Below, piece after piece: positions 1 through 51,660 of a stretch of 64,000 nt of DNA (positions are counted from its first letter, which is position 1; the number at the start of each line of letters is the position of its first letter). The notes beneath the pieces are model-generated. The model made no database searches, had not been told where the DNA came from, and saw nothing but the letters and a program-made list of their open reading frames with translations. Position numbers and translations under genes: made by a program. This DNA is from Epithemia pelagica (taxonomy: Eukaryota > Protista > Bacillariophyta): assembly GCA_946965045.2 (NCBI GenBank), contig OX337242.1, positions 62,001 through 126,000 of the forward strand, given 5' to 3'.

Positions 1-610
1 CTCATGGACAATGTCCAATTCAAAGTCGTCCATCACGTGCATATCCGGGAATACAATGCCGATGGCCAATGGCTCAATGACCCCCAAAACCATCCGCAAG
101 GACGAGACGGTCAACAACAACAACAAGAACGACTGGATGGGCCCTTTCACAATGGCGAATCCTTTGTCTATACGTCCGTCATTGCCAATGCGCACATTCC
201 ACGGGGCGGGGGCGTCAATTGGCGAGAAATCCCAGCCAAAATGAAGGTCCAATTGATTGGCATTAATCGATTGAATGATTTGACCGATTTTCATTTCACG
301 CTCTACTTTTCCAACGATTGTCTCTCCTACCCCGTCATTGTCACGGGAGATTACATGGGACCCCTCACAGTGGTACGTAGTATGGACATGCGCGCATGCA
401 TCCTCCAAGGAGGAGGACGTTGGTACTCGCTCGTTCTCCGTAACGTTGTTTTGTGTGGGTCTCACCATTCCAATCTATTTCTCTTGTTCTCTGTTTGACG
501 TTGTTGTGCTTCCTTTTGTCGTTCCCCCTCGTACTCAACCTCTATTACTACGGTAGACGGGTGTTTGGGATCCTCCGTTGGAATTTTGTCCCATGGGACT
601 TCACGATTGA
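1..610 (+). CDS. CACQP-domain family copy 1 (5' truncated by window edge); exons <1..372 and 557..610
   Basis: C-terminal half of the family domain (HIREYN...GPFHNGESFVYTSV...FSNDCLSYPVIVTGDYMGPLTV). GTACGT donor at 373, TAG acceptor at 556. Exon 2 reads TGVWDPPLEFCPMGLHD*. Confidence 0.85.
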
Positions 611-2020
611 GAAAAAGCGAGGATCAATGGACCCTTTACATTGTGCTACTACTCCTGACCATGGGCGCTGGCGCAATTGGTGGTCTGTACTTGTACTAGG
701 CAAAAAAGAACTGGGTGTGGCGGTGGTTGTTGTTGTTGGTGGTGGTGGCGTTCACACTCCTCCATGTTGAGTGCCTGTGTGGGTGTATGTGGTCGGAGGA
801 GTGCAACTCGTGTGTGGGTGTTCTGATTGGTACGACGCATAGGTAGCTGTTCCCGAACAATCGTACAACTACAGGTGGCCAAATGCGGCAGTTGATCTGC
901 TGGTATTCTTGTTGCCACAAGAGCCAGGAAGATCCAGAGGAGCACAACAACAACACTCACAAACGAGGGGACATGATCATCGTCATCATCACGACGAAAC
1001 CAACAACAACACCCACCAAAACTACAACGGAGAGATGAACTGTGCGCAGTTTGTTGGAGGAGACGAATCCATTTTTGCTGTCCAACGATTCGTAGGAGTG
1101 GACCATGTCGTACATCGTTGGACAAGGCGGAGAACAAAGTACAACGGCGCTCGAGCAGGAGGACCACCGGATGCCACACTTGTGTGTACAACGAAGGAGC
1201 AGAAAAAGGAGCAGGATAAACGACATGATGCTCTACAAACATGCACTTTAGTAGTAGATTCATTTTTACAACGGTAGGAGCAGAGTTTGCCGTGTTCGTT
1301 TCAGAAGCATCCTGTAGGGTCGTGAACTGATTCCGTCACAACCCGTGTGTTTGTGCAGAGTCCGATATCGCTTGTGGGTAACCTCGATACACGCACGCCC
1401 CCTCACCACGGAGAGCAATCTAGTGCAATGGTCCTCACTGTAGCAGGGATCCTGCGTTGAGTTCCAAGAGCAGAAGCATCCGTTTCTCCAGATGCCCTGG
1501 GTCCATCCATGCCGCCATGGGCCAAAGAGCTCTCCTCTAATGATATGGTTGCTACCTGCCCTTTTTCTATCGTTCGACAGACAGACGATTGAGGCGTGTC
1601 TCTCTATTTAACAGACGACATATGGTCGTTCGCCATACCTACATCGCATCATCATGATGTTCTATGTCGGGTGGTTTCGACGAACGGCGACATCAAAACC
1701 TGCTGAACGACAAGGAAGAGAAGATGCAGTGCCGGATGTTTGTTCGGATGCGGCTCTGGATCTCCACAAGATACCCCCTTTCTTTAGAATTCTGGGCCAG
1801 CAGAGATTCTCTCTCATCCTGTCTGGTCTGGCACTTTGGAGAAGAGAAGAAGAACTGAGAGCAGCAACCTACGTGCATCATTCTTCTCTTACACGGTGTA
1901 TCCTCCTTGTGTGCCAGCGGAACGATCGACTTTTGCACCTCCGTTGTTGGGAGTTTGTGGATCGACTTTTGCACCTCCATTGTGTGGTTGGGAGTTTTTG
2001 TATACACGGCAGCCAATTGA

Positions 2021-3127
2021 ATGGAATCCAGAACTAGCATGAGGAAAATATCATTGGGTTGGTGTGGAACGTCGGTCGCCATGATGATGGTGTGTTCCGT
2101 CATGCTGTTAGTATTGCTCTACAGTCTCTGGACAACAACTTTCGATACCAAGACGATCCTCATCAAGACAAGGACAACCACCACCCAATCCTTACCCAGC
2201 AGAATACAACATCCATGGTACAACCGCACACGGTTCTTGGAAACATGGTACCTACCCAACAGCACCACCATCAAGAACACTATCACTTCAAGAAATACCA
2301 GAACCATTCAACCAAATACTACTACTACCGAAACGGACCTGGGCGACAAACGCCGGTTTTTGGATTCCGTGTGTGCCTGTCAACCAAGTACGTGGGAATT
2401 TACGTTGGATTTTAGTCGAACGTCGTGTTACGATATTAGTATTCGAACCAAAGGTCAAGGTGTGGCGTGGGTGAGTTGTACCTTTACTCCGTCGCCCTCG
2501 GCCAATCCAGACAATAAGCAACAAGCGCAATTTGACGTGATTCATCAAATTCAAATTCGCGAATACAATACCCATGGCGAATGGCTCAACAATCCCAAAC
2601 CCATTTTTCATGCGCCCCTCTTTCCCAATCAAGATCCCTTCCCGGTACCATTGCACAATGGACAATCCTTCAAGTACACGTCCGTCTTGTGGTATGCCAA
2701 AAAAGATGGACATCGGTACAATGTCAAACATATTCCTTCCAAAATGGAAATCCGATTGATTGGAGAAAATAAATTGAAAGAGCGGACCGAATTTCATTTT
2801 ATCCTCTACTTTTCCAACGATTGCTTTTCCTATCCAGTCGTCGTCCGGGGCGATTATGTCGGACCCGTCATTGTGGTACGTATCATCGAACAACAAGACA
2901 CGAACTGGATGCTCGATTGTATTACCAGACTGGAGTAGGAGTACGGGCCATTCTTGGGGTCTGTTTCTCACTGTGGTGCTGTTTGTTGTTTTCTGGTTGT
3001 GGCTGTTTGTGTGTCATTCTTCTTCTCCTTCTAATGATTGCTATTCTTTGGTGCATGGCTGGTGTATTGGCTGCTCTCTAACGTACAGACGGGTGTTTCG
3101 GACCCACCACTGTCCTTTTGTTACTAA
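2021..3127 (+). CDS. CACQP-domain family copy 2; exons 2021..2875 and 3089..3127
   Basis: N-terminal hydrophobic segment, Thr-rich linker, RRFL, then CACQPSTWEFTLDFSR. Donor GTACGT at 2876; CTAAC..CAG acceptor at 3088. Exon 2 reads TGVSDPPLSFCY*. Confidence 0.88.
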
Positions 3128-4742
3128 ACCAAAACCAAGAAAGAAGAACCATCATATGCATCATCCAGACAAGTCATGGTCCCAGTACGCACCCACCATG
3201 CCGCAGAAGCGAGCGAGCGAGAGAGAGACTTGGGGAGAATGATCGGTTTTTTTGTGAGTGTCTTGAACTTGTGTGCCGGTCCCAGTGGTTGTCGTTTTCG
3301 TCATCCAACGACGTGAGGAGAAGTGTGGAGTCCTTGTCCAAAACAAACAACAAGGAGCGTGTTGGACTAGGCAGGTGGTGTTGGTGGTAGTCGTCGTGTA
3401 ACTCATTGTGAATCGACACTTGAAGTGGGACGTATTAACACAAGGAAACCAAATAGAGCTGGTCGGTAGAACCGCCACAACCACAATCACAACAAGGACG
3501 ACGACGACGACGACGACTCCATGGTGCAACTCATGGAGACACGTGAACGGACACGAAGCAAACTGCAACCAGACACACACGCACTTGGTCGGATGCATGT
3601 ATCCCTTTTTGTGTATGGAGAGGGGAAACGACGGTGTGGCCAGCTGGTTGCGGGATGCTGCCATGGGTTGGACCGAATTGGATTCGATTGCGGGAGTGGT
3701 GGTGTCATGGCAAGGGAATGGTCCGGGTGATGGCGGTGGGGGTCGGCGTGTTTCGTGTCACACACACACACACAGAGGGGGGTCTTTTGGCTCACATGGA
3801 AGAAGAACCATGGGTGTGGCAGTGATCCATCCTTACTAGTTGTAGTAGTTGTATCATTCAGGGGGAACTGAACTGTATAGTTTTGTGTTTGCATAGGATT
3901 CGAAAGTCGAACGGACTACCTATTTGTGCACTACTCTAGACGAACGGAGTGGGGTCCATGTCGTCTTGTCTGTTTCGAGTAGAGCAGGTTTTTTCGGGTG
4001 GGAGAGAGGTCGATTGGAGGAGTAAATAATAATAATACTTGCTCTGTTTCCCTCGGTAGTTTCTATTCCAAGATCTATTGTGCTGTTTGCGGGGTGGCGA
4101 TTCGAACAAAGAAGAAAGGCCATGGTCTGGGTGTTTGGATCTATCAATTTGTGGGACAGCTTCTCGAAGAAGAGTCGACCGACGATACTGTCCCAGGAAC
4201 AGTGGAGAAGTGACGTGGCATGACGAGACAGCGAATGAGAAGGCACAGTGAGTTCTCATTTCTCATGTTGCGAAACACCCGAAACAAACACCAAGCCCCA
4301 CCACACTCCATGGATCCTGACGAGTGCCATTGTGGTGGTGAAGCGCGAGGCGAAAAAAATAATTTTGGTTCCCGACAGGCCAATCGGACGCTCGCATTGC
4401 AGACCCGACGGCAACCAAGACAGACATCAAGCATACATACGTTTGTGCACTAATAGAGAGAGGCGGAGAGTCATTGGCCAAGTCCGGACAGGACGCAAGC
4501 AGAGGGGAACCAGAGGGGGGAGGAAAGAACTAGAGAAACAGACCAAGTCGTCGGTTGTTGCTGCCGCGAGCAGAGATCGAAAAAGATCCATTTGTAGCGT
4601 TCTTGATTCCGATTCGGTGGTGTCTCATTCATCGACATCACCAAGCCGTGTTTTGTGAGTCGAATTGGACATTCTCATCATCCTTCGCATCATCACCCCC
4701 GGTTGAAAGAATCTGGTTGACGATCAATCCAGACGAAGCAGC

Positions 4743-5881
4743 ATGCCTTTGGTACGATCCTGTCGCTGTGGTCCGATTAATCGCGCGACTCATTCGTTGG
4801 TCCTTCTGTGGGCCGTTTTCCAATCCTGGAAATGGGCCGTCGTTGTGGTGGTCGTCGAAGCGGCGGCAAATCCTCCTCGGGGTGGCAATTTCACCAAGGA
4901 AACAACGCTTGTTTCATCATCTTCCTCCTCTGCTTGGCGGTGGTTTCCTCCTGACACCACTGCTGCAACACGGCAGAATGGCACCTCCCACAATCACACC
5001 GTATCGTCGTCGTCCTATCTGCGACCACGACGTCAACAACAACAACAACACGAACTCGAACTGGCTCATAGCGGCGGTGTTCCTCGCTGTGCCTGTCAAC
5101 CGGGTCGTTGGACCTTTGTGTTGGATTTTGCCCGTACTACTTGTGGTCGAATGCAAGTTCAAACGCCCGGCGAAGGCTTGTCGTCGATTGGATGTCGGAT
5201 TGAACCCATGCCGGACAATATGCATGTGCAATTGGGCATTGTGCGCTACATTTACATCAACGAATACAACTCGTACGAACAAACCTTGAACGACCCCACC
5301 TCGGATGCCTCGCCACAATTTGTCAATGAACCCGATATTCCTCAAGATTCCTATGTCAATGGCGATACCTTTACCTATACGAGCGTCTTGGCCAAACCGA
5401 GCTATTATGGTCCCTCGGGCAGTTTGATTCCCCCCAAAGAAAAGGGTCGTCGATGGAAGAAAAAGACCCTCCATGTCCAAGAACGACCCAATGCCAACAA
5501 TGCCTTGCCGCAACGCATGGAAATTACCCTCGACGGAGAAGATAGTTGGGGTGGTGCCATGACCTTTGTCGTGATTTTGGAATTTTCGATGGACTGTTAC
5601 TTGTATCCCATTATTGTACCCGGAGATTATTTTGGACCACTCACCGTGGTACGTTCTTTGTATTGTTGTGGTTGTGGTGGTTTTGTGTGTTGTCCACGAG
5701 AAACACACACGAGCGCACACACACAAACGTTCCCAAGCTTGTCGGTTGTCCTGGTCTGACTCGACTGTTTCCATTCTTGTTCTTGTTGTTCTGGAATTTC
5801 TTGTTTTCTCGTCGTGGAGGACAGAGCCAAGTCCATGCTCCACCCACTCAGTTTTGCCCGGGAATCGGGACCGGGGCATGA
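4743..5881 (+). CDS. CACQP-domain family copy 3; exons 4743..5648 and 5825..5881
   Basis: CACQPGRWTFVLDFAR domain. Donor GTACGT at 5649, CAG acceptor at 5824. Exon 2 reads SQVHAPPTQFCPGIGTGA*. Confidence 0.85.
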
Positions 5882-7920: not shown

Positions 7921-8949
7921 ATGGCACTCGTATCTCCATTTTGGACATCCAGAACCGGGCCAGCATCAGCTGCTGCTGGATCAGCAACAACAACAATCTA
8001 CAGATGCTCCACCGCCCGGCCAACTTCAACGAGCTCAACCAACACTTGGTTGTTCTTGTTCTCGTCGTCGTTCGAGACGCGTCCTTATTGTCCTTCCCTA
8101 TCGTCTCTGTTTCCACATGGATTCTTAATACGCCTTTGCTTGTCTTGTTTGGTGTTACAATGGTGTCTCTTTTCGCAACACACCAATGATGCTGCTCCTG
8201 CTTCGTTGTTGGTTTCGGCAGTGGTGGCCTCCTCGATCTGTGCCTGTCAACCGTCGGAATGGGAATTCACGCTCGACTTTTCCCGCGTCGATTGTGGCGA
8301 TACCAATGTCCAAGTCGGAATGGGCGTCACGTGGGTGAGTTGTGGGTCCATTCCGAGCTTTTATGACAATCAATTTCGCAAGGTGGAATCGGTGGAAATT
8401 CGCGAATACGATGCCCAAGGACATTTGATTCACAATCAATACAAACAGGCCAGTTTGAATGGACCCTTTACCAATGGACAATCCTTTTCCTATACCAGTG
8501 TCTTGGCCTGGGCCCCCGCCGCCGATTACAACAACCATGTCCAAGTCTTGGAATTGCCGGAAACACTTGAGGTGCAAATTCGAGGGACCAATCAACTGGA
8601 GGAATCCAGTGAATTTCAATTCTACGTGTACTTTTCCAACGATTGCAAAGCCTTTCCCATTATGCAATCGGGAGATTATATCGGACCCGTGACAGTGGTA
8701 CGTGTTGTAATATGGTCCTACCTAGTAGTTTGGGAGTGTGGGAACCCTGTTTCCACGCGTTTGTCGTTGATTGTCATTTGTTTTATTAACCAGTCTCTCT
8801 TGTTGTTGTTGTTGTTGTTGTTGTTTCTTCTTCATTGTGCCGATTGCGATTCTTCTTGGTTGGTTGCTATGTGCGTACAGACACGAGTGAAGGATCCTCC
8901 CCAATCCTTTTGTCCCTTGGCAGGTCAAGCCAAAAAAGATGAAGATTGA
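7921..8949 (+). CDS. CACQP-domain family copy 4; exons 7921..8697 and 8881..8949 (start uncertain)
   Basis: CACQPSEWEFTLDFSR domain. Donor GTACGT at 8698, CAG acceptor at 8880. Exon 2 reads TRVKDPPQSFCPLAGQAKKDED*. The 183-nt intron is in frame and stop-free. Confidence 0.85.
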   Translation: MALVSPFWTSRTGPASAAAGSATTTIYRCSTARPTSTSSTNTWLFLFSSSFETRPYCPSLSSLFPHGFLIRLCLSCLVLQWCLFSQHTNDAAPASLLVSAVVASSICACQPSEWEFTLDFSRVDCGDTNVQVGMGVTWVSCGSIPSFYDNQFRKVESVEIREYDAQGHLIHNQYKQASLNGPFTNGQSFSYTSVLAWAPAADYNNHVQVLELPETLEVQIRGTNQLEESSEFQFYVYFSNDCKAFPIMQSGDYIGPVTVVRVVIWSYLVVWECGNPVSTRLSLIVICFINQSLLLLLLLLLFLLHCADCDSSWLVAMCVQTRVKDPPQSFCPLAGQAKKDED

Positions 8950-10105: not shown

Positions 10106-11062
10106 ATGGCGCTCCGTTGGTTCCTCGTATTCCTCTGCATCCCCCTGGCAGCTTCAATACCACTTCAGAACACTACAACAACAAGGACAACGACAACGAC
10201 GACTACCTCGACGATTGATTTGGGTGGAGGCTCCAATACCACCTTGATTCGAACGACCACCTTGCGCTATTCGACTACTGCAAAACCATCCTCATCGGTC
10301 CATCAAAATTCATGGCAGTACTTGAGGAGAACAAGACACAATCAAACCCAACAGCGGCAGAAGACACATCATCGACAGGCCACGACGACGGATCCTTGGT
10401 ACATGGAGACGACGTCGTCGTCCCGCAAACGCGTGCATCCCTGTGCCTGTCAACCGGTCCGATACGAATTCACCTTTGATTTTTCGCGAACGCTATGCGA
10501 AGAAACCAACATTCCGGAATTGTACGAAAATCGACCCAGTCGGGGCATTGACAAGGTGGAATGTTCCATGTATCCCGTCATTGACGATTACGTCCATGGA
10601 ACATCGTCGTGGAAACGCGTGACACAAATTCAATTGCACGAATTTGGCGATGCCTTGCATTATCATGCCCACCCGTCCACCAACAAACCGGGACCGACGG
10701 TTCATCCCAATCCGACGATCGTGTCAGGTCATTCGCCCTTTAAAAATGGCCAGTACTTTACCTACAATTCCATTCTCTTGTACATGAGTGCCATTCAATG
10801 CACCGCCGCCACCTGTTTGTTGCCGAGTCGCTTGCACATTCACATTTTTGGCGAAACGACCAATCCCTATCATCCCAAACGAGAAATGGAATTGACCTGG
10901 ATCTTTACCAAGGATTGCAATTATGTGCCCACCATTCACAAGGGACAATACGTCGGACCACTCGTCTTGACCAAGGTGGGAGAAGCCTCGGAGGCCTTTT
11001 GTGCCATTGTCGGACAAGAACCATCCAACGATCAAGCCGATGCATCGGTCCATATACCATGA
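10106..11062 (+). CDS. CACQP-domain family copy 5, intronless
   Basis: Signal-like MALRWFLVFLCIPLAASIP, Thr-rich linker, CACQPVRYEFTFDFSR. Reads GPLVL-TKVGEASEAFC straight through the site where the other copies have an intron. Confidence 0.9.
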   Translation: MALRWFLVFLCIPLAASIPLQNTTTTRTTTTTTTSTIDLGGGSNTTLIRTTTLRYSTTAKPSSSVHQNSWQYLRRTRHNQTQQRQKTHHRQATTTDPWYMETTSSSRKRVHPCACQPVRYEFTFDFSRTLCEETNIPELYENRPSRGIDKVECSMYPVIDDYVHGTSSWKRVTQIQLHEFGDALHYHAHPSTNKPGPTVHPNPTIVSGHSPFKNGQYFTYNSILLYMSAIQCTAATCLLPSRLHIHIFGETTNPYHPKREMELTWIFTKDCNYVPTIHKGQYVGPLVLTKVGEASEAFCAIVGQEPSNDQADASVHIP

Positions 11063-11820: not shown

Positions 11821-13030
11821 TTATGGAATCGTCACAGAAGAAGACGACGACGACGAAGCATCGGCCGTTCCTACCACGGTACAAAAGGATGGAGAGGGAG
11901 GTCCAACGTTGGTCTGCAAAACAAGTGAGCGGAAGAGAGAAAGAGAACGAGAGAAGAAAACGAAATATACACATATATGACAGATGAGTCCATACTACAG
12001 CAAACCAAGATTGAATCCAACAAACAACCTGCAGGTAACCAAGCAAGCAGCCGGCCAGGCTCTTGGTCTCCATAATAATAACACGTACCAACACGAGAGG
12101 TCCGACGCGTTGTCCGGCAGTCAAAAAGGGTCGATAGGAACAGTCCTTGGTAAAGACAAAGGTCACGAGCAATTCTCGTTGGGGTTCGAGATAGGCCGTC
12201 GTTTGGCCGACAATGCGGACATGCAAACTGTTGGGCAAACTGCACAGTGTGGGAGGACAATTGGTGGAGGGATCCATGGTTGTGATAATGCTGGTATATT
12301 GAAAGGAATGGCCATTCAAATAGTGAGGTTTTCCTTTCAAAATGGTGGGATGGACCAGTTCGTCCTTGTCGGGCAAGCCATCTTGCAGAAATTGATTTTG
12401 ATCCACTTCGTAAATTTCCACCTTGTTAATGTGTTTCCACGGATGAGGAGCGATATCATCTTCCCCAATGGGATGAAGTTCGCAATCGACATAGTCGAGA
12501 CCGTGTTTGTGCACCAATTCTTGTTCGTCTTGTTCATCCGCTTGTTGCGCTTTGAGTGCCGCGGCGGCTACTTCCATTTTGTCTCCATCCGAAAAGACAT
12601 GACCAATGTTGGTCTCGTCACAGGTACTATACGAAAAATCAAAGGTGAAGATGTACGAGCTGGGTTGACAGGCACAGGGTGGAACTGCTTTGGACTCAAT
12701 CGTGGTGGCCAAGGTCCGACGACGAGCCGCTTCTTCTTCTTCTTCTTCTTCTTCTTCTTGTTGTGGTGGTTGTGAAATGGAACCTGTACGGTTGTGGTGG
12801 AGCAGGGTCTTGGAGGACGATCGCAACCTGGTAGAAAGGAAGGAATCCTTTTGTTGCGTCGTCGTCGTTGTCGTCGTTACGGTGCGATTCTTGTGGTCCA
12901 TGGCCGCTGCTGTGGCTCCATTCCCATTGGCCAACAAACTGATCATGACCAAGAGGAGAAGGGACATGTTCCATCCATTCCTTGCGGATGCTGATACGGT
13001 TGAATGTCGAAGCATCATCCTCATCCTCAT
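11821..13030 (-). CDS. CACQP-domain family copy 6; exons 13030..12089 and 11913..11821
   Basis: Hydrophobic SLLLLVMISLLA, poly-Glu, RRRTL, then CACQPSSYIFTFDFS. Minus-strand donor GTACGT at 12088 and CAG acceptor at 11914. Exon 2 reads TNVGPPSPSFCTVVGTADASSSSSSSVTIP*. Confidence 0.88.
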
Positions 13031-13824
13031 GGTCTTTTTTGGTTTGGACGACACACACGGCTCCATCAAAGAGAAGAAGAAGCTCCCGATTTTTGCACTT
13101 TTTCTCTGCAAGATTTTTTTGGAACCACGGAACATTCCGACAGCTGGTGACGGTGACACTGTCAGGATTCAGGATGCATCATCGATGGACCTTGATGGAC
13201 GACGTACGGACGGTTCGAATGATGCATTCGGTCTCCTTTGATTCCACGTGGAGGTTTGTCGATGATGCATTCTTCCGCGGGCGGATGGAGTTTGCGCACT
13301 GCGCACGCTCTCACACACAGAATCTCAATTCCTCATCCAAGGGGCATAAGTTGCGTCGGATTGGGCCCAAGAAAAAAGTGGAGCGCACAGCGGAATTGTC
13401 GGGCATGAGTCCGTATTGTAGTCAACAAAAACAGGTCTATGTGCAACATGCAACATGCAACATGTACCATCAGGACGGCATACTTGGACATAGAGCGCCT
13501 GCCCGTGAAAAAGCTTCCGAGACTTTTTAAGTATCGAATTTTTGGCATTCTCCGTCCATCTCTTTGTATTGCCCCGTGGAATGGCATGCGTTTCCGAGGC
13601 CAAGCCGGAGACATTAGCTGCCACATTATGATTTTTCGCATCAAAGATCAAGAATCCAAGATACCACAGTTGCAGCTTCACCTTGTGTTCCTTCTTCCTT
13701 CTCTCCATCATCATCATCATTCATCATCCTAATATATTGATTGCAAGAGAGGAAGGGAGAGAGTGCTTCGCATCACTCAACAATTAAAAGAAAGAACGCC
13801 CAAGCAAGAGACAACAACAACAAG

Positions 13825-14879
13825 ATGATGCAAAAGGCTCCATGTTTGGTTCCTCTCGTCCTCCTAGTTTGTTGGCTCCTGACGATAAAGACGACTGGAG
13901 CGCGGACCTGGACCAATACAACGACAACGACATCAAGAAGAAGAAGAACTCAAGCCACACTATCACAGCCACAACAATCACCACAAGACCATCGTCGTAC
14001 CACGTTGCGAACTCCTCGAGAACGATGTGCCTGTCAACCGGCCGGATGGGAATTCACCTTTGATTTTTCTCATACGACTTGTACCGATACGAATATTGTC
14101 GGTGTCGCCCCACCGGGCGAAGGCCAATACGGCCACTACAAGCAACCGCCACCGCGGGGAAGTTTTCAACATGTCCTGTGCAAATCCAATCCAGCCTCAT
14201 CGTACGAATCGGTCGATTCCTTGGATGAAGAATTGGAACACATTGTCCAAATTGATATTCGCGAATACAAGGATGCGCAATTGAAACAAGTCTATGTGTT
14301 GGATCCGCCCTTGACTATTTTGGGACCACTCTACAATGGACAAGCCTTTCAATATCATTCCGTCGTCCTCGACATGCCATTGGAAGAATGCGATGTGGCC
14401 CTCTCCACCAGCAAGCCCAGTCATTGCGAATTGCCCTCGGCCTTGACCATTCATTTTACCGGTTTAACGCAAATGAACAATCGCAAAGATTTTGAAATTA
14501 CCTGGATCTTTGCTCATGAATGCTCGGTCTTGCCCATTGTCTATCCCGGAGACTTTATTGGACCACTCACCGTTGTACGTGTGTTTCGTAAGGAGTACCA
14601 CGCTCTCAAGGAGAGAGTGATGGTTTTCTCCTGGCCATTCGTCGAATCGAATGACTCTCTCACACCCACGTTCTGGTGTCTTTTTTTGGTTTGTGTGTGT
14701 GTGCGTATTTTTGTGGTGTATCTCTTGCCGTTCCGGGTGTGTTTGCTGTGCCTTGTGTGTGTGTCTTGGTGTGTATATCGTGCGGCTGGACGAGATAGAC
14801 GCGAGTCGAACAACCACCCAAAGAATTTTGCAGTGAGGTTCGTGGACCACCACCTTCTGGAGAAGAAGGGACAAATTGA
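13825..14879 (+). CDS. CACQP-domain family copy 7; exons 13825..14574 and 14799..14879
   Basis: Signal-like MMQKAPCLVPLVLLVCWLLTIKTTGA, CACQPAGWEFTFDFS. Donor GTACGT at 14575, TAG acceptor at 14798. Exon 2 reads TRVEQPPKEFCSEVRGPPPSGEEGTN*. Confidence 0.88.
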
Positions 14880-18062: not shown

Positions 18063-18220
18063 CTCTTGTTGGAGATACTCTTGTCCCAGAGTTGAATTTG
18101 CAAACGGCTCGGCATTCAGCAGGTACGAGGCCGACACTCTGGCAAAATGAATTCCAGTGTCGGCAAATCCGTTTGGCTCGTGGACGTCGAGGCAACGGTC
18201 AAGCCATGTTCGACTTGTTT
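18063..18220 (-). pseudogene. Internal fragment of a CACQP-family gene most similar to copy 13
   Basis: KQVEHGLTVASTSTSQTDLPTLEFILPECRPRTC*MPSRLQIQLWDKS aligns with EQVEQGLAVASASDATSQSELPTPESILQDCRPRTCWMPSRLQIQLFGKS at ~31025-31170. The Trp codon is TGA at 18116..18118. Confidence 0.85.
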
Positions 18221-18365
18221 CGAGGTCGGAAAAAAGACGACAATGGTATGGTGGACATCGTCTCCAGAAAAAAAAGGCACATCGGTGGCCGGATGTTGTG
18301 TGGTTTCTTGCGCACGAGGGCCCAGATCCAACGGCAAGGGCAGACAGTTGTCTTTCAACGTTGGT

Positions 18366-19944
18366 TCATGGGGTATTATTCCTGGAGGAATCTTGGTGCC
18401 GTGTTTGGGAGGACGACGACGAGAAACGAATGCGCAAGGGCTTGTGGTTGTCGTTGTCACGTGATGGAATGGCAGCAGATGCAATAGTACCATCCGTGGA
18501 GGTTTTGGCATCCATGGTGGTGGTAGTGCCATCTTCCAACTCACTCGCCCGAGTGGTGGTCTTGGACTGTGGATTCTGGGTGTCACTGCTTGTGCCCACG
18601 GCCTTGTGGTGGTTGTTCTTGGTACTGCTACTACTACTGCTACGACTGGACAGGTCTTGGACCGTGGGACTGTTGGGAGTTCTGGCATCGGATGTTGTTG
18701 TTTTCTTCTTCTTCTTGTCGGAATCGTGTCGATAGGGTTCCACAACGAGCGGACACAAGGATCGCGGAGGATCGCCAATGCGTGTCTGTGTTTTGAGCAC
18801 CATCCAGAGTGGATGATTGGATCGGAGCAAATCAAAGAACATCGTGTGAGAGGAATTGCTCTAGAACGGCGTCTACTTCCTAGAACATGCGCATCGAACA
18901 CAAACCGTATACAGACAACAAGTATAATATACGTACCACTGTGACGGGTCCAATGTAATCTCCGGGAAAGACAACGGGAAAGGTTTTGCAATCATTGGTA
19001 AATTCCAGCGTGAATTCAAAATCCAACAAGTTTTGACTGGCATCTCGTCCAAACAAGTGGACCGTCAAGGACGTGGGAATGGTACTTTTGCGAAGCAATT
19101 GTTGCATGGAATCGGCCTTGTTGTCATTCTTATTGTTGGTACTGGACGGCGTGTTGGTCATGGTCCGTGTCATGGTGGACACGACGGATGTGTAGGCAAA
19201 GGCTTGGCCATTGCCAAAGGGCCCCTCCAATTCTTCTTGGGGGGTCAAATGTTTGGTTCCGGGCGGCGACGCATATTGATATTCATGATTGAGCCAATCG
19301 TGTTGGGCATTGTATTCTTGAATTTGAACAAATTCAATCATATTCCAATGCAAGGCGTCGACGGTATGGGAGGTGAGGGGCGATCGACTGGCATGACTGG
19401 TGGGGGGAATGGAGACACAGGTGACCGAGGCCAAGCCCGTCCGAACACTGGGATTGAGATTGGTATCGGTACAATCGCCTTTCCGACTAAAATCAAAGGT
19501 AAATTCCCATTTGCCGGGTTGACAGGCACACAAGTTTTGGGGCGTCGTGGTCGTCTTTTTGGTTTTTGTTTGCTTATTGTCGTTGCTAGTCGTTGGATTG
19601 GTGGTGGTGTCGGACGAAGATGTTTGTCGATGCGATTGAACAACTGTGGAGGAGTGGTTGGTCCATTTACGCGGTTGGTCGTTGCTTCGTTTTCGAACGC
19701 GAACCATGGTGCGATTGGCAGCATCCAAAGGAGTGGACCACCACCATGCTGCTGCTGATGTGGAGCTCTTTGGGAGAGTGTTATTCGTCGTATCGACAAG
19801 GTTTTGGAACGGTTGTCGTGTTCGTGTGGTGTTGGTTGCAGCAGCCATCACCGCACCAGAAAAGGAGGAACAGTACCAGACGGTCCACCACCAGCACACG
19901 AGGCAGCAAAGACAACGGCGGCGCCACAGAAAAGACATCATCAT
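18366..19944 (-). CDS. CACQP-domain family copy 8 with long Ser/Thr/Lys tail; exons 19944..18937 and 18785..18366
   Basis: Signal-like MMMSFLWRRRCLCCLVCWWWTVWYC..., CACQPGKWEFTFDFSR. Donor GTACGT at 18936, CAG acceptor at 18786. Exon 2 starts TRIGDPPRSLCPL and runs 139 aa. Confidence 0.87.
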
Positions 19945-22069: not shown

Positions 22070-22842
22070 CTACTTGCCCACACGGGGACAAAAGCCTCGG
22101 GGTGGACTCTGGACATTAGTCTGGAACAATTCCGGGAGGAGGAGAAGTAATATTCCAGAGAAATACACACACAAGAGAGAAAGAGAGCGAGAGAGAGAGT
22201 GTATGTGTGATATTGATATAGATTGCAGACCCAACCACACGTGTCAGAAACACACAAAGAGTATCGAATAATCCCTGCATGTCTAGATAGATGCAATAGG
22301 ATACGTACCACCGTAACGGGTCCAATGTAATCGCCACTCGACACAATGGGGGAAAACATGCAATTGGTATTGGAAAAGGCCCAGTAAATTTCATATTCTT
22401 GATCGGCGCCTTCATAGGTTTTGCCAAACAAGTGAATGTTGAGCGTGGCGGGCATGAGACAGGTATCGGGCGTACAAGACCAGGCCACTTTGGGATTGAG
22501 GGGCATCATTAAACTGGTATAGGAAAAGGCATGGCCATTGAACAGCGGACCATCAAAGGTCCAGGGATTCATTAACCATTCGTATTCGGAATCGAATTCT
22601 TGGATTTGAATCAAACTCACCATGTGCAATTGCGACGTCGGTGACGGTGGTGTCGCCGTACAGCCCATGGCCTTGAGACCACCGGATTTTTGCAAAAAAG
22701 TGTCGCTGCAATCGAGACGGGCAAAATCCAAGGTAAATTCCCAGGCACCCGGTTGACAGGCACACAACATGGGTTCCGGTGGGGGAGCCGGAACCGGCGC
22801 TTGTGTGTGCTGGATGGGAGGAGTAAAGGGATCGACTTGCAT
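22070..22842 (-). CDS. CACQP-domain family copy 9, no evident signal peptide; exons 22842..22309 and 22120..22070
   Basis: MQVDPFTPPIQHTQAPVPAPPPEPMLCACQPGAWEFTLDF, with an in-frame TAG at 22867..22869 upstream. Donor GTACGT at 22308. Exon 2 reads TNVQSPPRGFCPRVGK*. Confidence 0.85.
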
Positions 22843-23568: not shown

Positions 23569-24740
23569 ATGGCGATCATGCACTATCCAATCGTTCTTGT
23601 ACTCTTGGTACTGGTACTGGCACTGGTACTTGTTTTGGATTTGGTGTCGGCCGATCCAGGCCACGAAAATCACCACCACCACCATGATGGTGACAACAAG
23701 GATGGCAACTCCATGTGTGCCTGTCAACCCTCCACGTGGACCTTGGCCTTGAACATGACCCGTCCGGCCGATTGTCAACATGGCAATTTGCCGACGAATG
23801 GCCAAGTGTTGGTCGGCATTGTCCGCATGTCCTGTGAGTATCAAGCCTTTTCCGAGGACGGCACGCAAGACGTTCCCGCCCAACATATCATGGAACAAGT
23901 CGACTTTGTCCAAATTCACGAATACAATCGCCACGGCACATTGTTGAATGACGACCAAAAACCCCAAAAAGTCTTTGTCGGACCCTACCAACAAGAACAA
24001 GACATTCTACCCAAATTGTCCTACACCTCGGTTGTCCTTCGTATGAGCAAACAACATGACCAATGGATGAACACGCAACAACAACAACAACAACCACCAA
24101 CCGAACAAACCGATCGTACTACCAACAGCGACACGGAGAGTGACAAACAACCAAACGAAAAAGAGCAAGAAAACGAAGAAGACGGAGTCAAGAGTAGCAA
24201 TGGGTTGCGCACGAAACGAAAACAGCCCTCCGGTCCTTGTCATGGTGCCCACGACAAGCCGGATCAAGCCATGCCCATGACGACGTGTTTGCCCACCCAA
24301 TGGAAGGTGGATATTTACGGCAAAAATTACAAACATCAACCCTTGATCATGGAATGGACCATTTTCTTTACCAATGAGTGTCAGGATTATCCGCTGGGAT
24401 TACAACCAGTGACGGAACCGGCCGCCACGCAGTATTATTATTTGGGACCCCTCACCTTGGTAAGTAATACGTAGGACGAGACCGTGTCCATGTGTCACCA
24501 CAGACACTGACGACAACAACAACAACAACAACAACAAAGACTGTGGCGTTGTTGTTGTTATTGTTGTTGGTGGTGGTCAAAACAAACGAGCCATTGATGC
24601 ATCCATCATAACTTTCTCTCTCTCTCTCTCAACCATTGTGTCTGGTTTCGTCACGTCATGTTGTTTTGTTTTGTGTTTAGACCGCCATGGGTCCTCCCAT
24701 GTCCAACTTTTGTCCATTGGCCAAGGATGATTCGCATTAA
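23569..24740 (+). CDS. CACQP-domain family copy 10 (His-rich N-terminus); exons 23569..24459 and 24681..24740
   Basis: Signal MAIMHYPIVLVLLVLVLALVLVLDLVSA, then DPGHENHHHHHDG and CACQPSTWTLALN. Donor GTAAGT at 24460, TAG acceptor at 24680. Exon 2 reads TAMGPPMSNFCPLAKDDSH*. Confidence 0.9.
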
Positions 24741-26265: not shown

Positions 26266-27320
26266 ATGGCGACCAGGAATTCCCACCTCTTTTTTCTACT
26301 CGCACTCCTCCTTCTTGTTTCGGTTCTCGTCTCAGCCGATCCCGGCCACGATCACCATGACGATGGTGGGGACGACAATGACGGTACACCCATGTGTGCC
26401 TGTCAACCCTCCACCTGGACCTTGGCCTTGAATTTGACCCGTCCGGCCGATTGTCAACATACCAATTTACCCTCGGACGGTCACGTCTTGGTCGGCATTG
26501 CCAGCATGTCGTGCGATTATCAAGCCTTTTCCGATGACGGCACGGACGATCCGGCCGATCACATTATGGAGGAAGTGGACTTTGTCCAAATTCACGAATA
26601 CAATCGCAAGGGCAAACTGTTGAATGACGACAAGAAACCGGAAAAAGTCTTTGTCGGCCCCTATCACAAGCAAGAAGTCGGAGCCCTCTTGTCCTATACG
26701 TCCGTCGTGGTGCGCATGAGCGAACAACATGACGTGTGGATGAAAACGCAACAAGAACAAACGGATAGTGACAAGGAGAAGGACCAAGAGGACGACGAAG
26801 AGGACGATGAGGACGACGCAAGTGACACGGAGGAGGACGTCAAGAGTAGCAATGGCCTTCGCAACAAACGAAAACAGCCGAAACAAAAATTGGGCGGTCC
26901 CTCCTGTCCTTGTCACGGCGCGCACAAGCCCGGTCAAGCCATGCCCATGACGTGTTTGCCGACGAAATGGAAGGTGGACATTTACGGCAAGAATTCCAAG
27001 AAGGAACCCTTGCTCATGGAATGGACCATTTTCTTTACCAATGATTGTAACCATTATCCACTGGGATTGGAAGTCACGGAACCGGCCGCCACGCATTATT
27101 ATTTGGGACCCCTCACGTTGGTACGTAATGGAACAGACGAGACTGTGGTCGAACCGAACCAATCCATCCACTGCTCTGTCGCTCAACCATTGTGTGTTTT
27201 GATTGTTTGTTTGTTGGTTTTGGAATGATTGGGTGTTACTATATACTACTCTTGTATTAGACCGCCATGGGGCCTCCCATGTCCAACTTTTGTCCCTTGG
27301 CCAAGGATGATCCGCAGTAA
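26266..27320 (+). CDS. CACQP-domain family copy 11 (His/acidic-rich, sister of copy 10); exons 26266..27120 and 27261..27320
   Basis: Signal MATRNSHLFFLLALLLLVSVLVSA, then DPGHDHHDDG and a DKEKDQEDDEEDDEDD insert. Donor GTACGT at 27121. Exon 2 reads TAMGPPMSNFCPLAKDDPQ*. Confidence 0.9.
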
Positions 27321-28531: not shown

Positions 28532-29638
28532 ATGACTCGATCTGGAATGGTTGCAAGACAAAATCATCGGTCGGTTGCAATGGCTGTCGTCGTAGTGTCG
28601 CTACTGACGGTGTCGGTGACTCTAGCCATGATTCTTCCCCAACAACCATGGCCACGTTCGCAGGACACACAATCGGAACCCAAGGAACCCATGAGGCCAA
28701 ATGATGCTTCAACAGTGGGAGGAACGACCATCAACGCTTCCCACACACCGTCTCGTGTACCTGCGTCTATGGACGATTCCTTGGATGGATTCAACGCCAC
28801 GGCCTCCACGTTCTCATGGCCTCGGTTTGGTACCACCAATGCGCTTTCCTCTCCCACAAACAGTTCGAGATTCTTGCGGTCCGGTGGTCGTGCGTCGTCG
28901 TCCACGTGCGCGTGTCAACCGGCCGAATGGGAATTTACCTTGCACTTGGCCCGTGGACCGTGTGGCGATACCAATGTTCCGACGGCCCATTCCAAATTGA
29001 GTGGTTTGGCCAGCATTTTGTGTACCACGACGCCCGCCCACGGCGGTCAATTTGAAGTGGTGGATTTTGTCCAAATTCACGAATACAATCGGCACAATCG
29101 ATTGCTCAATCCCAATTCCAAACCCATGCGCTTTACGGGTCCGTACATGGGCGCGACGGGGACGGCCGCCACGATTTATTACGCCAGTGTCTTGTACATG
29201 ACCAATGCCCAGACCGGACATTTGAATTATAAGCATGTGTGCAATTCCCAAGCCGATGGCGGCGATTGTATGCCCACCTCGCTGCAAATTCATTTGTATG
29301 GCAAGAATTATGCCAAGGAAAATTTGCAATTTCAATGGACTCTCACCTTTACCAATGATTGTACCGTCTATCCCGTCGAAATTGTGCCCGGACATTACAT
29401 GGGACCTGTGCAAGTGGTACGTGTCAAACTTGTTGGTGTGTGGATACCAGATAGTGAGAGGCTTTTTTCTAACACTGTCACTCTGCTACTTTTCTTTTTT
29501 TGGTTTGTTTCTTTCGATGGCCTTGGCTTCGTGGCAATCCCAATCTCTGTCGTTCAAACTGTTCTACAGAAACGAGTGGGCAATGCCGTGCCAGCCTTTT
29601 GTCCCAAGGCTCTTAATGTCAAGGGGAATTGGAGATGA
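28532..29638 (+). CDS. CACQP-domain family copy 12; exons 28532..29416 and 29570..29638
   Basis: Hydrophobic VAMAVVVVSLLTVSVTLA, RFL, then CACQPAEWEFTLHLAR. Donor GTACGT at 29417, CAG acceptor at 29569. Exon 2 reads KRVGNAVPAFCPKALNVKGNWR*. The 153-nt intron is in frame and stop-free. Confidence 0.88.
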   Translation: MTRSGMVARQNHRSVAMAVVVVSLLTVSVTLAMILPQQPWPRSQDTQSEPKEPMRPNDASTVGGTTINASHTPSRVPASMDDSLDGFNATASTFSWPRFGTTNALSSPTNSSRFLRSGGRASSSTCACQPAEWEFTLHLARGPCGDTNVPTAHSKLSGLASILCTTTPAHGGQFEVVDFVQIHEYNRHNRLLNPNSKPMRFTGPYMGATGTAATIYYASVLYMTNAQTGHLNYKHVCNSQADGGDCMPTSLQIHLYGKNYAKENLQFQWTLTFTNDCTVYPVEIVPGHYMGPVQVVRVKLVGVWIPDSERLFSNTVTLLLFFFWFVSFDGLGFVAIPISVVQTVLQKRVGNAVPAFCPKALNVKGNWR

Positions 29639-30563: not shown

Positions 30564-31562
30564 ATGACCACCTCTCATCTCAAAGTGGCCTCGTCCCTGC
30601 CCTCGTATGGCTTTTGTGTGTGTCAACCCATGGCGGTCGAATTTACCTTGGACTTTTCGCGAGTTCCTACGGCTGCTACTGCTTCTGCATCATCGTCGTC
30701 GTCGCCTGGTTTGGATTGCAACTTGCCAACCAATTTTGTCACGGGAGAGGACACGGGCATTGCAGAACTCACGTGTGACTCATCCACCGATGATAAAACA
30801 ACCGGATCATCGTCGTCATGGACGAATTGGCAAGTGGTGGATTTTGTCCAAATTACCGAATACGATGACGAACGATTGAATCGAGGGACGAATCCCGAGA
30901 CTTCCAAAACCAAAACAAGCACGACACAAGAAGAACAAGATGCCTTTGCCACGTTGCAATTGGACGGTCCCTTTTACAATGGTCATTCCTTTTCCTATAC
31001 GACCTGGATGTGGCGGAATGCCTTGGAACAAGTCGAACAAGGCTTGGCCGTTGCTTCGGCTTCGGATGCTACCAGTCAATCAGAGTTGCCGACCCCAGAA
31101 TCCATTTTGCAAGACTGTCGGCCTCGGACCTGTTGGATGCCGAGTCGGTTGCAAATTCAACTCTTTGGCAAGAGTTTGCTCCAAGAGGACGAACTGGAAC
31201 AGGAATCCCAATTGCTCATGGATTGGGATGTCACCTGGCGCTTTACCAACGATTGCAATGTCTTTCCCGTCTTGGTGGCCGGTCATTACATTGGACCGCT
31301 CACGTTGGTACGTTCCACAGTGTGTGTGTCTGTCCGTTGCGTTTGCGAGCCGCTGTCGGTCTTTGGAGTGTGGACCTGCCCTGCTGCAAACCAATACGGT
31401 CTGACACACTTGTTGTTTGGATTCTCACAACTCGACTATGTTCTTTTGTATCTATTTCGTTTACAGACTCATGTGTCGGATCCTCCCGAAGCCTTGTGTC
31501 CCTTGGCGGGTGTGGCACCCGAACTTCGACGATCGCCACCTCATTTGCCGTCTGGACCCTAG
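30564..31562 (+). CDS. CACQP-domain family copy 13 (CVCQP variant, 5' end uncertain); exons 30564..31307 and 31467..31562
   Basis: CVCQPMAVEFTLDFSR. Donor GTACGT at 31308, CAG acceptor at 31466. Exon 2 reads THVSDPPEALCPLAG.... No signal peptide in this frame; CTAATCCAACAG just before the ATG may be an acceptor for an upstream exon. Confidence 0.85.
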   Translation: MTTSHLKVASSLPSYGFCVCQPMAVEFTLDFSRVPTAATASASSSSSPGLDCNLPTNFVTGEDTGIAELTCDSSTDDKTTGSSSSWTNWQVVDFVQITEYDDERLNRGTNPETSKTKTSTTQEEQDAFATLQLDGPFYNGHSFSYTTWMWRNALEQVEQGLAVASASDATSQSELPTPESILQDCRPRTCWMPSRLQIQLFGKSLLQEDELEQESQLLMDWDVTWRFTNDCNVFPVLVAGHYIGPLTLVRSTVCVSVRCVCEPLSVFGVWTCPAANQYGLTHLLFGFSQLDYVLLYLFRLQTHVSDPPEALCPLAGVAPELRRSPPHLPSGP

Positions 31563-33603: not shown

Positions 33604-35047
33604 CTACCTCGAATTGTTCTCGTCGTCCTCCACATGCACTGACTTGTACAAGGGACAAAAGGTGGAGGAGGGCGGTGACACTCGAGTCTGTGTGTAGTCG
33701 ACAACCATCACCATTTCACAACCAGGATCCGTATCCAACAAATCATGACACAAACAATAGAAACAGCAACAACAACAAGAGAAGTGAGACCAGGGGCATT
33801 CCAATCTTCTCCACAAGAACCAATACAATAACAACGACCACGAACGAACGAAGAAGCCACGAATCCGTCACGACACATACACACAATCCATCCATCCATA
33901 TATATATATATATCTCTCTCTCGCTCTGCTATACTCTTCTACAAGTCCTACGTACCACCACAATGGGACCGACAAAGTCGCCGCGCCGTAAGACGGGAAA
34001 GGCGTGACAGTCGTTCGAAAAATTGAGCGTCACGTGCAATTCGACCAATTCATCGTGTCGATTTTGTCCAAACAAGTGAATTTGCAAGCTGCTGGGCAAT
34101 TGTTGGGAGGCATCCAAATCGGCATTGTGTTGAGGATCATCTTCGGGTTGTGGTGGTGGTGGTTGTTGTGGTTGTGATTCGTCGTCGGGTGGCGGCCGCC
34201 ACGGATGGGGGCGTGGTGGGTCCATTCGAGTGGTAAGGGTGGTCGTGACTTGTTGTTGCGCAATGAGACTGGTATAGGCAAAGGAATTGCCATTGTAAAA
34301 GGGACCGTCCAAATTGGGATGATTGTCCCAATGGGCTTGAATGTCGCTGGTTTCTTGGTCAATGTCGGGATTGTTGAGCCAGAGTCCCCACATGTTGTAT
34401 TCGCGCATTTGGACGAAGGAAACCGTCGTCAATTGCAATTCGTGTTTTGGCGGCAATTCTTGGCGCAATTCGGTGCGTTCGCCAGCCGCCGTAGCGGCGG
34501 CTTGGGCCTTGGCCGAGACGGGTATCCATTCGCAATGGACACTGTCCAATCCCATATTGGCTTGAATCGTTTCCCGACGCAAATTGGTTTCGTGACAGGA
34601 AATGCGCGAAAAATCCAACGTGAATTCGTATTCGACGGGTTGACAGGCACAGACGGACGAGACACTCGACACTAAACCACGAGAAGAAGGACGAAGACGA
34701 ACCACATTATCGACCGTATCCACCGTATCTTGTTGGTGGTGGTGGTGATTAAAGAACCGGTTGGGGGATCGTTGTTGTTGGTGGTGAAGTTCTTTTCCTG
34801 ATTGTGGCCCTGTATGAATGATTTCCGTAATGGACACGCCCTGTTGCCGTGTCGACGTCAACCAGGAGGAGGGCCAGGGCACCAACAGGGACGACAATGA
34901 GGTTCTTATTGTGGGTGTCCACCACCACAAGACACAGGGCAGGAGCATGAGGGATCCAATCACAAACAGCATTCTTGGTGGTGTCATAATGGTGGTCATA
35001 GTCCACCGGTAATAGTCATGCGGTCGTTGTGGTTGCATTCTTGCCAT
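33604..35047 (-). CDS. CACQP-domain family copy 14; exons 35047..33956 and 33687..33604
   Basis: TM-like MLFVIGSLMLLPCVLWWW, RGL, then CACQPVEYEFTLDFSR. Donor GTACGT at 33955, CAG acceptor at 33688. Exon 2 reads TRVSPPSSTFCPLYKSVHVEDDENNSR*. Confidence 0.88.
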
Positions 35048-40204: not shown

Positions 40205-40267
40205 AGAACTTAAACTGTCTTTACTCAAATCATCCGACACACATGAGCGTCATAAACTCCTTTTGTA

Positions 40268-46534: not shown

Positions 46535-46986
46535 AGTGGTCGTCCCACCCGCGTTGCTGCTCAACAAAGAGAGACCCAAAGGTCCTTTTTTGGTGCTAGT
46601 AGTCGTAGGGTGATGGTTTCCGCGTGGGAGGCTGGTGGTGGAACGCCGTTGACTCGGTGTCGTCGTTTTTTTCTTTTTTTCCCTTGCGAGCGTGTGTGTT
46701 TGGAACCACTGTGTTTTGTGGTGGTTCGAATTCAAACTCTCTCCTCCTCCATGACGATACTACCACCGCAATGCTGCTGGTAGTTCGTGTTGGATCTCTT
46801 CTGTCGTCAGGGTTGCGTTCCACAAACACGGACAGAACCAATGAGAGTTCGAGAGAGAACCTGTTGTTGTTGCAGACGAAAATGAAATGTCGCTCCCGAG
46901 ATTTTGTGGGGATGGTCCGGACATTTTTGCAAATTGATTGGGGAAAGTGAAAATCCTGGAACGCCGGCGCGTAACCCGAGAGAGGA

Positions 46987-47811: not shown

Positions 47812-47815
47812 GTGC

Positions 47816-47847
<32 letters not shown>

Positions 47848-50479: not shown

Positions 50480-50740
50480 TTAATTCCACGGGCTGGATTC
50501 GGCGAGTCCAGCGGCGGCTGCCAAACCGTTTCCTCCTTCTTGTTGGTTGTGGTGTTGGGTTTCAGTTTGTTCCTCCCCCGACAAGGGACAAAAGTCCTTG
50601 GGAGGAGCCATGACATGGGTCTATCATTGGTAGGTAGGTTATGAGGTCGTTTGTTGTCGTCGTACGTCGAAGCCAAAATCATGGCCCACCAAACCAACCG
50701 CCAAAAACAACACACAAACAAGACGAGTCATGAGCCATTC

Positions 50741-50772
<32 letters not shown>

Positions 50773-51660
50773 GAGCCACAAAATCAACCAATCATTCCCC
50801 AATCACAACACACACTCCATATATTCTCTCTCTCTCTCTCTCTAGTAGAGAGAGATACGTACCACGGTCAAGGGTCCAATATAGGTTCCCGGTTCCACAA
50901 CGGGATAAACGCTACAATCATTGGTAAAAATCCAGGTAATGTCCCATTCTTGCATGCGTCCATCGCGGCCGGGTCCCGTCATTTGGACATGGAGCGAGGC
51001 GGGCAAGACACAGGTTTCGGGCGAACACTGGTTATTTTGCATGGTCAAGATTACCGATTGGTACCAAAAGCCTTGTCCGCTCGTCAAGGTACCGTACAAG
51101 GTGGTGGGATTGACAATCCATTCGTGGACGGCATCGTATTCTTGCAAGCGAATCAATTCAATCGACAGCAATTCCGGCGTGGATTGATTCCACCGCACAT
51201 TGTTGGGTTTGGTATGCGGATGGGCATCCAGTTTCATGTCCGGCTTGTCATTGTGACGACCTTGTTGTTTGGACGATTGAATCATGCCCTGGCCCGGTTG
51301 GGGAAAGGAGACGCGACAACTCACTTGTTGAATGCCTCGCACCGGAGTAATGGGTTTGTGCACAAAGGCCTGGAGTGGTACATTGGTTTGTTGACAGGAG
51401 GTGCGACTAAAATCCAAGGCAAATTCCCACGCCGCCGGATGACAGGCACATTTTGGCAAGGGCTTGAGCGACCGGTGGGATTCCGTACTGGAAGTGGAGG
51501 CATTCGGGACCGAGTCGGATCGGAATTTGGGAGCACCACGACGCAATAAAGTTTGCGTGTGATTGGTCGTACGGGTGGCCTGACAAGAGGACGACCAGAA
51601 GGACAGCAACAACAAGAAGGAGAAAAGGAAAGAGACGGCACTTGTCGTGCGAGTTGTCAT
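50480..51660 (-). CDS. CACQP-domain family copy 15 (CACHP variant), isolated from the main array; exons 51660..50863 and 50620..50480
   Basis: Signal MTTRTTSAVSFLFSFLLLLSFWSSSCQA, RSL, then CACHPAAWEFALDFSR. Donor GTACGT at 50862, TAG acceptor at 50621. Exon 2 reads THVMAPPKDFCPLSGEEQ...SSPWN*. Confidence 0.88.

Follow-up and report, generated by a model that had tools for sequence, protein, structure and literature searches.

The 64,000-nt stretch of the Epithemia pelagica genome analyzed here (hereafter the window; positions C18:62001-126000 of a 60.5 Mb genome in 23 contigs) raises the question of what a tandem array of cysteine-rich genes is for, and whether it is still functional. An initial annotation, made from the sequence alone, had described 15 genes on both strands, each encoding a secreted protein of an unrecognized family, and had proposed a role in the cell wall, adhesion, or ligand or metal recognition, with a decaying pseudogene field as the alternative. 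The explanation that we favor, with a probability of roughly 0.6, is a functional, transcribed tandem array of secreted or membrane-anchored glycoproteins whose stalks would each display a head, either on the cell surface or within the wall/mucilage matrix.

Exactly 15 copies of the domain, 10 on the forward and five on the reverse strand, were recovered between positions 1 and 51,711 by a motif scan, by tblastn with one copy as the query, and by a hidden Markov model (HMM) of the family run against every open reading frame (ORF) of the window (Table 1), which agrees with the number first reported. These copies gave HMM E-values of 1e-39 to 1e-62, all remaining ORFs of the window staying at E = 1 or above; the profile covers all copies end to end except g01, which is truncated by the window start, the array extending ~17 kb further upstream with three more genes. 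The first exons of all 15 copies are open. Each copy carries a variable leader followed by one domain of 152-250 residues, the length differences arising in the alignment from insertions at a small number of fixed sites. The domain starts with CxC(Q/H)P and continues with (W/Y)xFxLDF, two more Cys, an IxEY(N/D) strand, GPFxNGxxFxYTS, LPxxLxI and F(T/S)N(D/E)C, ending in G(D/H)Y(I/V)GP(L/V)T(V/L). Six Cys are conserved, one of them in the C-terminal PPxx(F/L)CP segment, according to three alignments (A1-A3), the translated mini-exons and spliced relatives. That is, the pattern of a variable leader and one Cys-rich domain with a CxC start, later Cys and N(D/E)C is as originally claimed. The array "fragments" of the same annotation came down to one relic of ~160 nt, and its "segmental duplication" holds for the g10/g11 pair (domains at 23716 and 26395; 80-84% nucleotide and 74% amino acid identity).

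The last Cys sits behind an intron in 14 of the copies, as was noted from the start. Exon 1 ends in ...GPxT(V/L), with the donor immediately after it (GTACGT in 13 copies, GTAAGT in the copy at 23716), and the intron, 140-268 nt long, ends in (C/T)AG; the second exon encodes T-x-V-x-x-P-P-x-x-(F/L)-C-(P) and then a tail of 1 to 128 residues. The intron is in phase 0 and in the identical alignment column in all 14 copies, and all 14 splice-site pairs are intact. The remaining copy, g05 (at 10442), reads straight through (GPLVL-TKVGEASEAFC), a precise intron loss that had also been recognized, and its sister gene on contig C11 retains the intron. What had been taken as a mark of the array is, however, shared by paralogs outside the window: of the 16 examined, 11 have the donor exactly 54 nt (18 codons) past the N(D/E)C Cys, two are intronless and three were not resolved by our script, and the donors reported for these paralogs are GTAAGT in nine, GTACGT in two and GTACGA in one. 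The two intronless genes (C8e and C8f, or L025 and L028) lie on contig C8, in the canonical clade described below, and represent losses independent of that in g05. The common donor offset indicates, at the level of gene sequence, that the intron dates back to the common ancestor of the whole family, with at least two losses since. In transcriptome-derived relatives the PPxxxCP segment is contiguous with the last strand of the domain, which provides independent support for the splice pattern; many metagenomic ORFs end in ...GWTIFVS plus junk, that is, in read-through of the GTnAGT donor.

Expression was assessed by comparing four public sequencing runs over positions 26100-31700, a region that holds three genes (g11, g12 and g13). 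Three runs behave as genomic DNA. In the fourth (X4), the intergenic segment 27783-28343 is uncovered and contigs skip exactly 27121-27260, 29417-29569 and 31308-31466, with GT..AG ends that match the predicted introns to the base. The three junctions are absent from all three DNA-like runs. Therefore, all three genes examined are transcribed and spliced as predicted, which bears out, for these introns, the splicing that the initial annotation had proposed. As to selection, the closest pairs show synonymous divergence (dS) of 0.58-1.3 and ratios of nonsynonymous to synonymous substitution (dN/dS) of 0.28-0.37, the median dN/dS over all pairs with measurable dS being ~0.5, with those pairs near saturation. 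Most paralog pairs share 25-50% of residues and only g10/g11 represents a younger pair. The duplications are thus old and the array is under purifying selection.

The array is not an isolated expansion. The E. pelagica genome holds at least 35 matches to the domain, 18 of them on this part of C18, one on C11 and the remainder on C8 (two clusters), C7 and C5. A word-based protein search finds few relatives, and the size of the family becomes visible only by exhaustive profile search: 1,107 public clusters (50% identity) matched at E <= 1e-3 and 771 at E <= 1e-10, with reciprocal matches to the C8/C7 paralogs and other diatoms at E-values of 1e-11 to 1e-136. This answers the homolog count beyond the window that had been proposed as a check. 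Thirty clusters were looked up for names and seven carried a taxon, which together with the protein P0004 makes eight named members from six species; every one is from a pennate diatom and annotated as hypothetical (among the species are Epithemia clementina, Mayamaea pseudoterrestris, Grammatophora oceanica and two of Entomoneis). The C18 array groups with the C11 gene and a single E. clementina protein as one clade of the maximum-likelihood tree (support 100/99), apart from a canonical clade that comprises the C8/C7 genes and the other diatoms. Hence, judging from the tree and the profile matches, the array is a single, lineage-specific branch within a large family of pennate diatoms that has no name as yet. 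The earlier view of an expanded paralogous family stands in that the duplications are old (dS of at least 0.58) and the closest pairs constrained, but the expansion is not confined to the array, which is one clade of a very large family.

Structure prediction gave two models, the second of high confidence. The AlphaFold2 model of the intronless copy g05 reached a predicted local distance difference test (pLDDT) score of 80.9 and a predicted template modeling (pTM) score of 0.80, and that of a canonical domain (Mayamaea residues 41-205, 55-sequence alignment) a pLDDT of 96.4 and a pTM of 0.90, with eight strands and the C-terminal Cys segment confidently placed. Because of this placement, the mini-exon is predicted to encode an integral piece of the fold. 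No named domain fits, as the initial annotation had suspected: Pfam assigned no family to five array members and five neighboring ORFs of the window, 10 long relatives or 55 domains scanned singly; sequence profile searches of the PDB with alignments A1 and A3 gave nothing meaningful; the ESM Atlas, searched by features and by shape, returned no usable match (template modeling score <= 0.40); Foldseek found nothing in the PDB at E <= 1e-3 for either model; and VIA-align against 48,161 chains peaked at Z 5.5 with a root-mean-square deviation (rmsd) of ~4 Å over 94-116 residues, below the level that the tool calls meaningful. As far as Pfam, the PDB and the searched literature show, the domain is undescribed; it is a new extracellular-type domain family, not a new kind of system.

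The proteins of the two clades are built differently around the same domain. Canonical proteins (E. clementina KAL7565202.1, M. pseudoterrestris GKY96656.1 and Entomoneis and Grammatophora sequences from MMETSP) match the same profile, at E-values down to 1e-136 for multi-domain proteins, and share with the array the CxCxP start, the six Cys, the N(D/E)C...PPxxxCP end and the intron position 54 nt downstream of the N(D/E)C Cys. Their domain follows right after the signal peptide, is often repeated, and is succeeded by a Pro/Ser/Thr stalk and a Lys-rich tail, with IGWT as the last strand and GTAAGT as the donor, whereas the array clade has an anchor, a stalk and a single C-terminal domain with GP(L/V)TV as the last strand and GTACGT as the donor. 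The canonical order of signal peptide, domain(s), mucin-like stalk and Lys-rich tail is found in Entomoneis and Grammatophora transcripts as well as in Mayamaea and Epithemia gene models. In the C8/C7 genes of E. pelagica, the domain likewise begins at once after the signal peptide, and several genes chain two or more domains via Pro/Ser/Thr-rich linkers; in these, an intron comes after each domain exon, and the exon beyond it begins with DPPxxxCP, leading through the linker into the next domain. The multi-domain paralogs L020, L023 and L027 (G000:C8 1.36-1.40 Mb and 3.46 Mb) and L029 and L030 (C7 0.89 Mb) have (P/S/T)-rich and PSDV-type repeat linkers, and the C7 genes share with KAL7565202.1 an extra N-terminal Cys-rich module (CxxCP...C...C) ahead of the first domain.

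Within the window, 12 of the 14 complete genes encode a hydrophobic N-terminal segment of 13-32 uncharged residues; judging from these hydrophobic runs, g05, g11 and g15 resemble classical cleaved signals and g02, g08, g12 and g14 type II anchors. Ser plus Thr make up 21-36% of the leader in 10 of the 14 complete copies (8-12% in g09, g10 and g11), and eight copies have one to four NxS/T sequons in it. The domain is C-terminal with a short tail, except in g08, whose tail has 139 residues. The leaders of g10 (23569-23715) and g11 (26266-26394) carry acidic, His-rich runs (DPGH..HHHHH..D) directly behind the signal peptide; these two leaders are the sole hint of the metal recognition that had been suggested. 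For g10, a further in-frame Met exists upstream at 23269.

Under the favored explanation, the proteins would enter the secretory pathway via an N-terminal signal peptide or signal anchor, the Ser/Thr-rich leader with its NxT sequons would form a presumably glycosylated stalk, and the protein would end in an eight-stranded beta-sandwich of ~150 core residues whose six conserved Cys probably pair into three disulfides. The last Cys, on the mini-exon behind the ancient phase-0 intron, would be an integral, confidently modeled part of this fold. Since a conserved core carries large copy-specific loop insertions, the sandwich may serve to bind partners or as a structural element, exposed as a head on the cell surface or within the organic wall/mucilage matrix, with the insertions supplying diversity, and both layouts (anchor-stalk-head in the array, head-stalk-tail in canonical relatives) would hold the sandwich away from the anchoring end. 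That the proteins are secreted and glycosylated, form disulfides, reside outside the cell and act in binding or in the matrix is thus predicted from sequence features, and a cell-wall or adhesion role is plausible only by analogy with the multi-domain, mucin-like relatives. In addition, one multi-domain relative, from E. clementina, fits an entry of a whole-cell proteome by its mass of 128.85 kDa.

Several observations weigh against this explanation. The array clade lacks the post-domain mucin stalk and basic tail of the canonical relatives, and the analogy with them is therefore indirect. The ORFs of g09 and g13, as far as they can be defined, have no hydrophobic N-terminus. No characterized homolog ties the domain to a location or ligand. 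The splicing evidence covers three of the 14 introns, and X4 is not recorded as RNA, its RNA nature being deduced from the exact GT..AG skips and the absent intergenic coverage. With respect to g13, both the DNA-like runs and X4 carry contigs over 30378-30569, just upstream of the gene, that replace or skip 34 and 77 nt with ends other than GT..AG; these point to indels between alleles in the 5' region, a possible reason for the absent signal sequence in the ORF of this haplotype.

Functional analogs in diatoms are Craspedostauros australis CaFAP1, CaTrailin3/4 and Ca5609 DUF2, with six-Cys modules of unknown fold alternating with Pro/Thr/Ser-rich regions, for which roles in adhesion and matrix mechanics have been proposed (bioRxiv 10.1101/2023.03.06.531300). 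These trail and mucin-like proteins are extracellular and combine Cys modules with Pro/Thr/Ser-rich regions, and the likeness is a functional analogy: the family motifs are all missing from the Ca5609 DUF2 repeat as printed (206 aa), and a motif text search found no CxCxP variants in the supplement that prints the C. australis trail protein sequences. Homology with the adhesive-trail repeats, which we considered as a candidate, is thus unsupported.

Alternatively, the proteins could be lumenal or endomembrane ones (silica deposition vesicle, vacuole, endoplasmic reticulum/Golgi) whose type II anchors hold the heads inside a compartment. Several leaders have hydrophobic runs of 22-32 residues, nearer to signal anchors than to cleaved signals, and canonical relatives end in Lys-rich tails, which are reminiscent of silica-associated proteins. 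However, other copies have classical short signal peptides, and the array clade is devoid of Lys-rich tails save for a short Lys run in g08, so we regard this alternative as unlikely.

A diversified recognition repertoire, with variable loops on a conserved sandwich directed at bacteria, mates or the compartment of the nitrogen-fixing endosymbiont, and with the clade expanded in the Epithemia lineage for that purpose, appears to us quite unlikely. It would fit the composition of the array clade (only copies of this genome and one E. clementina protein), the large copy-specific insertions at few loop positions of a conserved core, and the retention of old, diverged paralogs. It is also reported that an Epithemia-specific orthogroup of 23-30 kDa, domain-less proteins, OG0000250, is enriched in purified diazoplasts, its host proteins being Ec_g12982 (27.003 kDa), Ec_g13000 (29.941 kDa) and Ec_g24166 (23.256 kDa) (PNAS 2025, PMC12377750). 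Yet no link between the family and that orthogroup was found: by mass alone, no sequences being printed, no family protein matches any of the three values (P0004 has 23.622 kDa). Moreover, the databases searched contain a single E. clementina member of the clade, and whole-cell samples alone yielded the sole family member identified in that proteome. This member is the multi-domain KAL7565202.1 (P0006), which has the same average mass, 128.85 kDa, as proteome entry Ec_g19201 (bioRxiv supplement); it was identified by mass, with one peptide in whole-cell samples and none detected in diazoplast samples. A connection to the Epithemia diazoplast import candidates, with masses unmatched and Ec_g19201 confined to whole cells, is accordingly unsupported. 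The more specific proposal, in which the Epithemia lineage has its own repertoire of recognition heads at the surface, with variable loops on a new sandwich fold locked by disulfides, for the endosymbiont compartment, bacteria or mates, is slightly more doubtful again. If true, such a repertoire would be functionally comparable to the symbiosis-targeted Cys-rich families of other hosts. Plant DUF26 proteins and the nodule-specific cysteine-rich (NCR) peptides of legumes have, as here, expanded in arrays by duplication and divergence, with secretory targeting and a Cys scaffold with variable surfaces. They are not homologous to the diatom domain, which is a 150-residue sandwich and not a small peptide, and the paralogs described here are old and not recently amplified.

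It is even less probable that the domain is a divergent member of the C2 superfamily, that is, a Ca2+-dependent membrane or lipid binder. C2 domains (PKC, NEDD4, PI3K, extended synaptotagmin, and the extracellular C2 of Jagged/Delta) are likewise eight-stranded beta-sandwiches of similar size, and they are the most common VIA-align rows, roughly half of the best rows for both models. These rows, however, do not exceed the Z of 5.5 mentioned above, the Foldseek search was empty, with low probability, and no Pfam C2 family (PF00168 and relatives) was found at E <= 1 in 55 members or in the window proteins; in addition, the secretory, disulfide-rich context differs from that of cytosolic C2 domains. 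Finally, that the array is a decaying pseudogene field left by past duplications, a reading to which the high divergence of the paralogs, the single small relic and the two copies with no evident signal sequence might lend themselves, can practically be set aside, because the 15 open first exons, the 14 intact splice-site pairs and dN/dS values of ~0.3 refute it together with the correctly spliced transcripts of all three genes examined.

Other features of the window do not belong to the family. Between g03 and g04 (5980-7855) lies a young tandem duplication of a ~935-bp unit (96.3% identity over 946 columns) with ORFs that have no Pfam match; Tandem Repeats Finder reported nothing, the unit exceeding its period limit. 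Between g07 and g08, two forward-strand ORFs (15554-16252 and 16692-17657) have an Endonuclease/Exonuclease/phosphatase domain (E 2.7e-8 and 1.3e-9) and share a 211-nt stretch that is 85% identical; they may be endonuclease remnants of the long interspersed nuclear element (LINE) type or a duplicated gene. A forward frame of 1,538 aa (35588-40201) has a single pentatricopeptide repeat (PPR) match near residues 882-907 and no assignment elsewhere. Between the main array and g15, a 752-aa ORF on the reverse strand (44480-46735) gives a borderline match to GDP-fucose protein O-fucosyltransferase (E 2.2e-7; 31.2 bits vs. a cut-off of 31.5), and the position of this glycosyltransferase ORF beside putative glycoproteins may be a coincidence. 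A Copia-type polyprotein ORF at 57362-61336 on the reverse strand (RVT_2 at E 6e-15, weak integrase core) agrees with the copia element previously placed at 57062-63320.

Table 1. Genes of the array and the relic fragment (window coordinates; reverse-strand segments are given in the direction of transcription)
Feature	Span (strand)	Structure	Remarks
g01	1..610 (+)	exon 1 to 372, intron 373-556 (GTACGT), mini-exon 557-610	exon 1 cut by window start; full domain in G000:C18:61866-62372
g02	2021..3127 (+)	exon 1 2021-2875 (domain 2372-2875), intron 2876-3088 (GTACGT), mini-exon 3089-3127	
g03	4743..5881 (+)	exon 1 4743-5648 (domain 5088-5648), intron 5649-5824 (GTACGT), mini-exon 5825-5881	
g04	7921..8949 (+)	exon 1 7921-8697 (domain 8239-8697), intron 8698-8880 (GTACGT), mini-exon 8881-8949	P0002 is an allele or strain copy, 99% identical
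g05	10106..11062 (+)	intronless; domain from 10442	last Cys within the single exon
g06	11821..13135 (-)	exon 1 13135-12089 (domain 12676-12089), intron 12088-11914 (GTACGT), mini-exon 11913-11821	
g07	13825..14879 (+)	exon 1 13825-14574 (domain 14026-14574), intron 14575-14798 (GTACGT), mini-exon 14799-14879	
g08	18366..19944 (-)	exon 1 19944-18937 (domain 19530-18937), intron 18936-18786 (GTACGT), exon 2 18785-18366	139-aa tail, Ser/Thr/Lys-rich
g09	22070..22842 (-)	exon 1 22842-22309 (domain 22764-22309), intron 22308-22121 (GTACGT), mini-exon 22120-22070	ORF with no hydrophobic N-terminus
g10	23569..24740 (+)	exon 1 from Met 23569 to 24459 (domain 23716-24459), intron 24460-24680 (sole GTAAGT donor), mini-exon 24681-24740	His-rich leader
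g11	26266..27320 (+)	exon 1 26266-27120 (domain 26395-27120), intron 27121-27260, mini-exon 27261-27320	closest paralog of g10; junction seen in X4 contig
g12	28532..29638 (+)	exon 1 28532-29416 (domain 28907-29416), intron 29417-29569, mini-exon 29570-29638	junction seen in X4 contig
g13	30564..31562 (+)	exon 1 30564-31307 (domain 30615-31307), intron 31308-31466, mini-exon 31467-31562	junction seen in X4 contig; ORF with no signal sequence
g14	33604..35047 (-)	exon 1 35047-33956 (domain 34651-33956), intron 33955-33688 (GTACGT), mini-exon 33687-33604	
g15	50480..51660 (-)	exon 1 51660-50863 (domain 51450-50863), intron 50862-50621 (GTACGT), exon 2 50620-50480	outlying copy
relic	18069..18225 (-)	resembles part of the g13 domain, 79% over 164 nt	sole fragment found

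In conclusion, diatom surfaces, adhesives and wall matrices are largely built of proteins that have no recognizable domains, and one such module is now precisely defined by its domain boundaries and six Cys, a conserved intron, a confident predicted fold with no solved relative, and more than 1,100 clusters whose named members are all pennate. The family profile offers annotators a handle on a large block of "hypothetical proteins", and experimenters a compact domain to work with. Further, one clade has been re-engineered from a head-stalk-tail to an anchor-stalk-head layout, with ~19 old paralogs kept under selection, which points to functional diversification.

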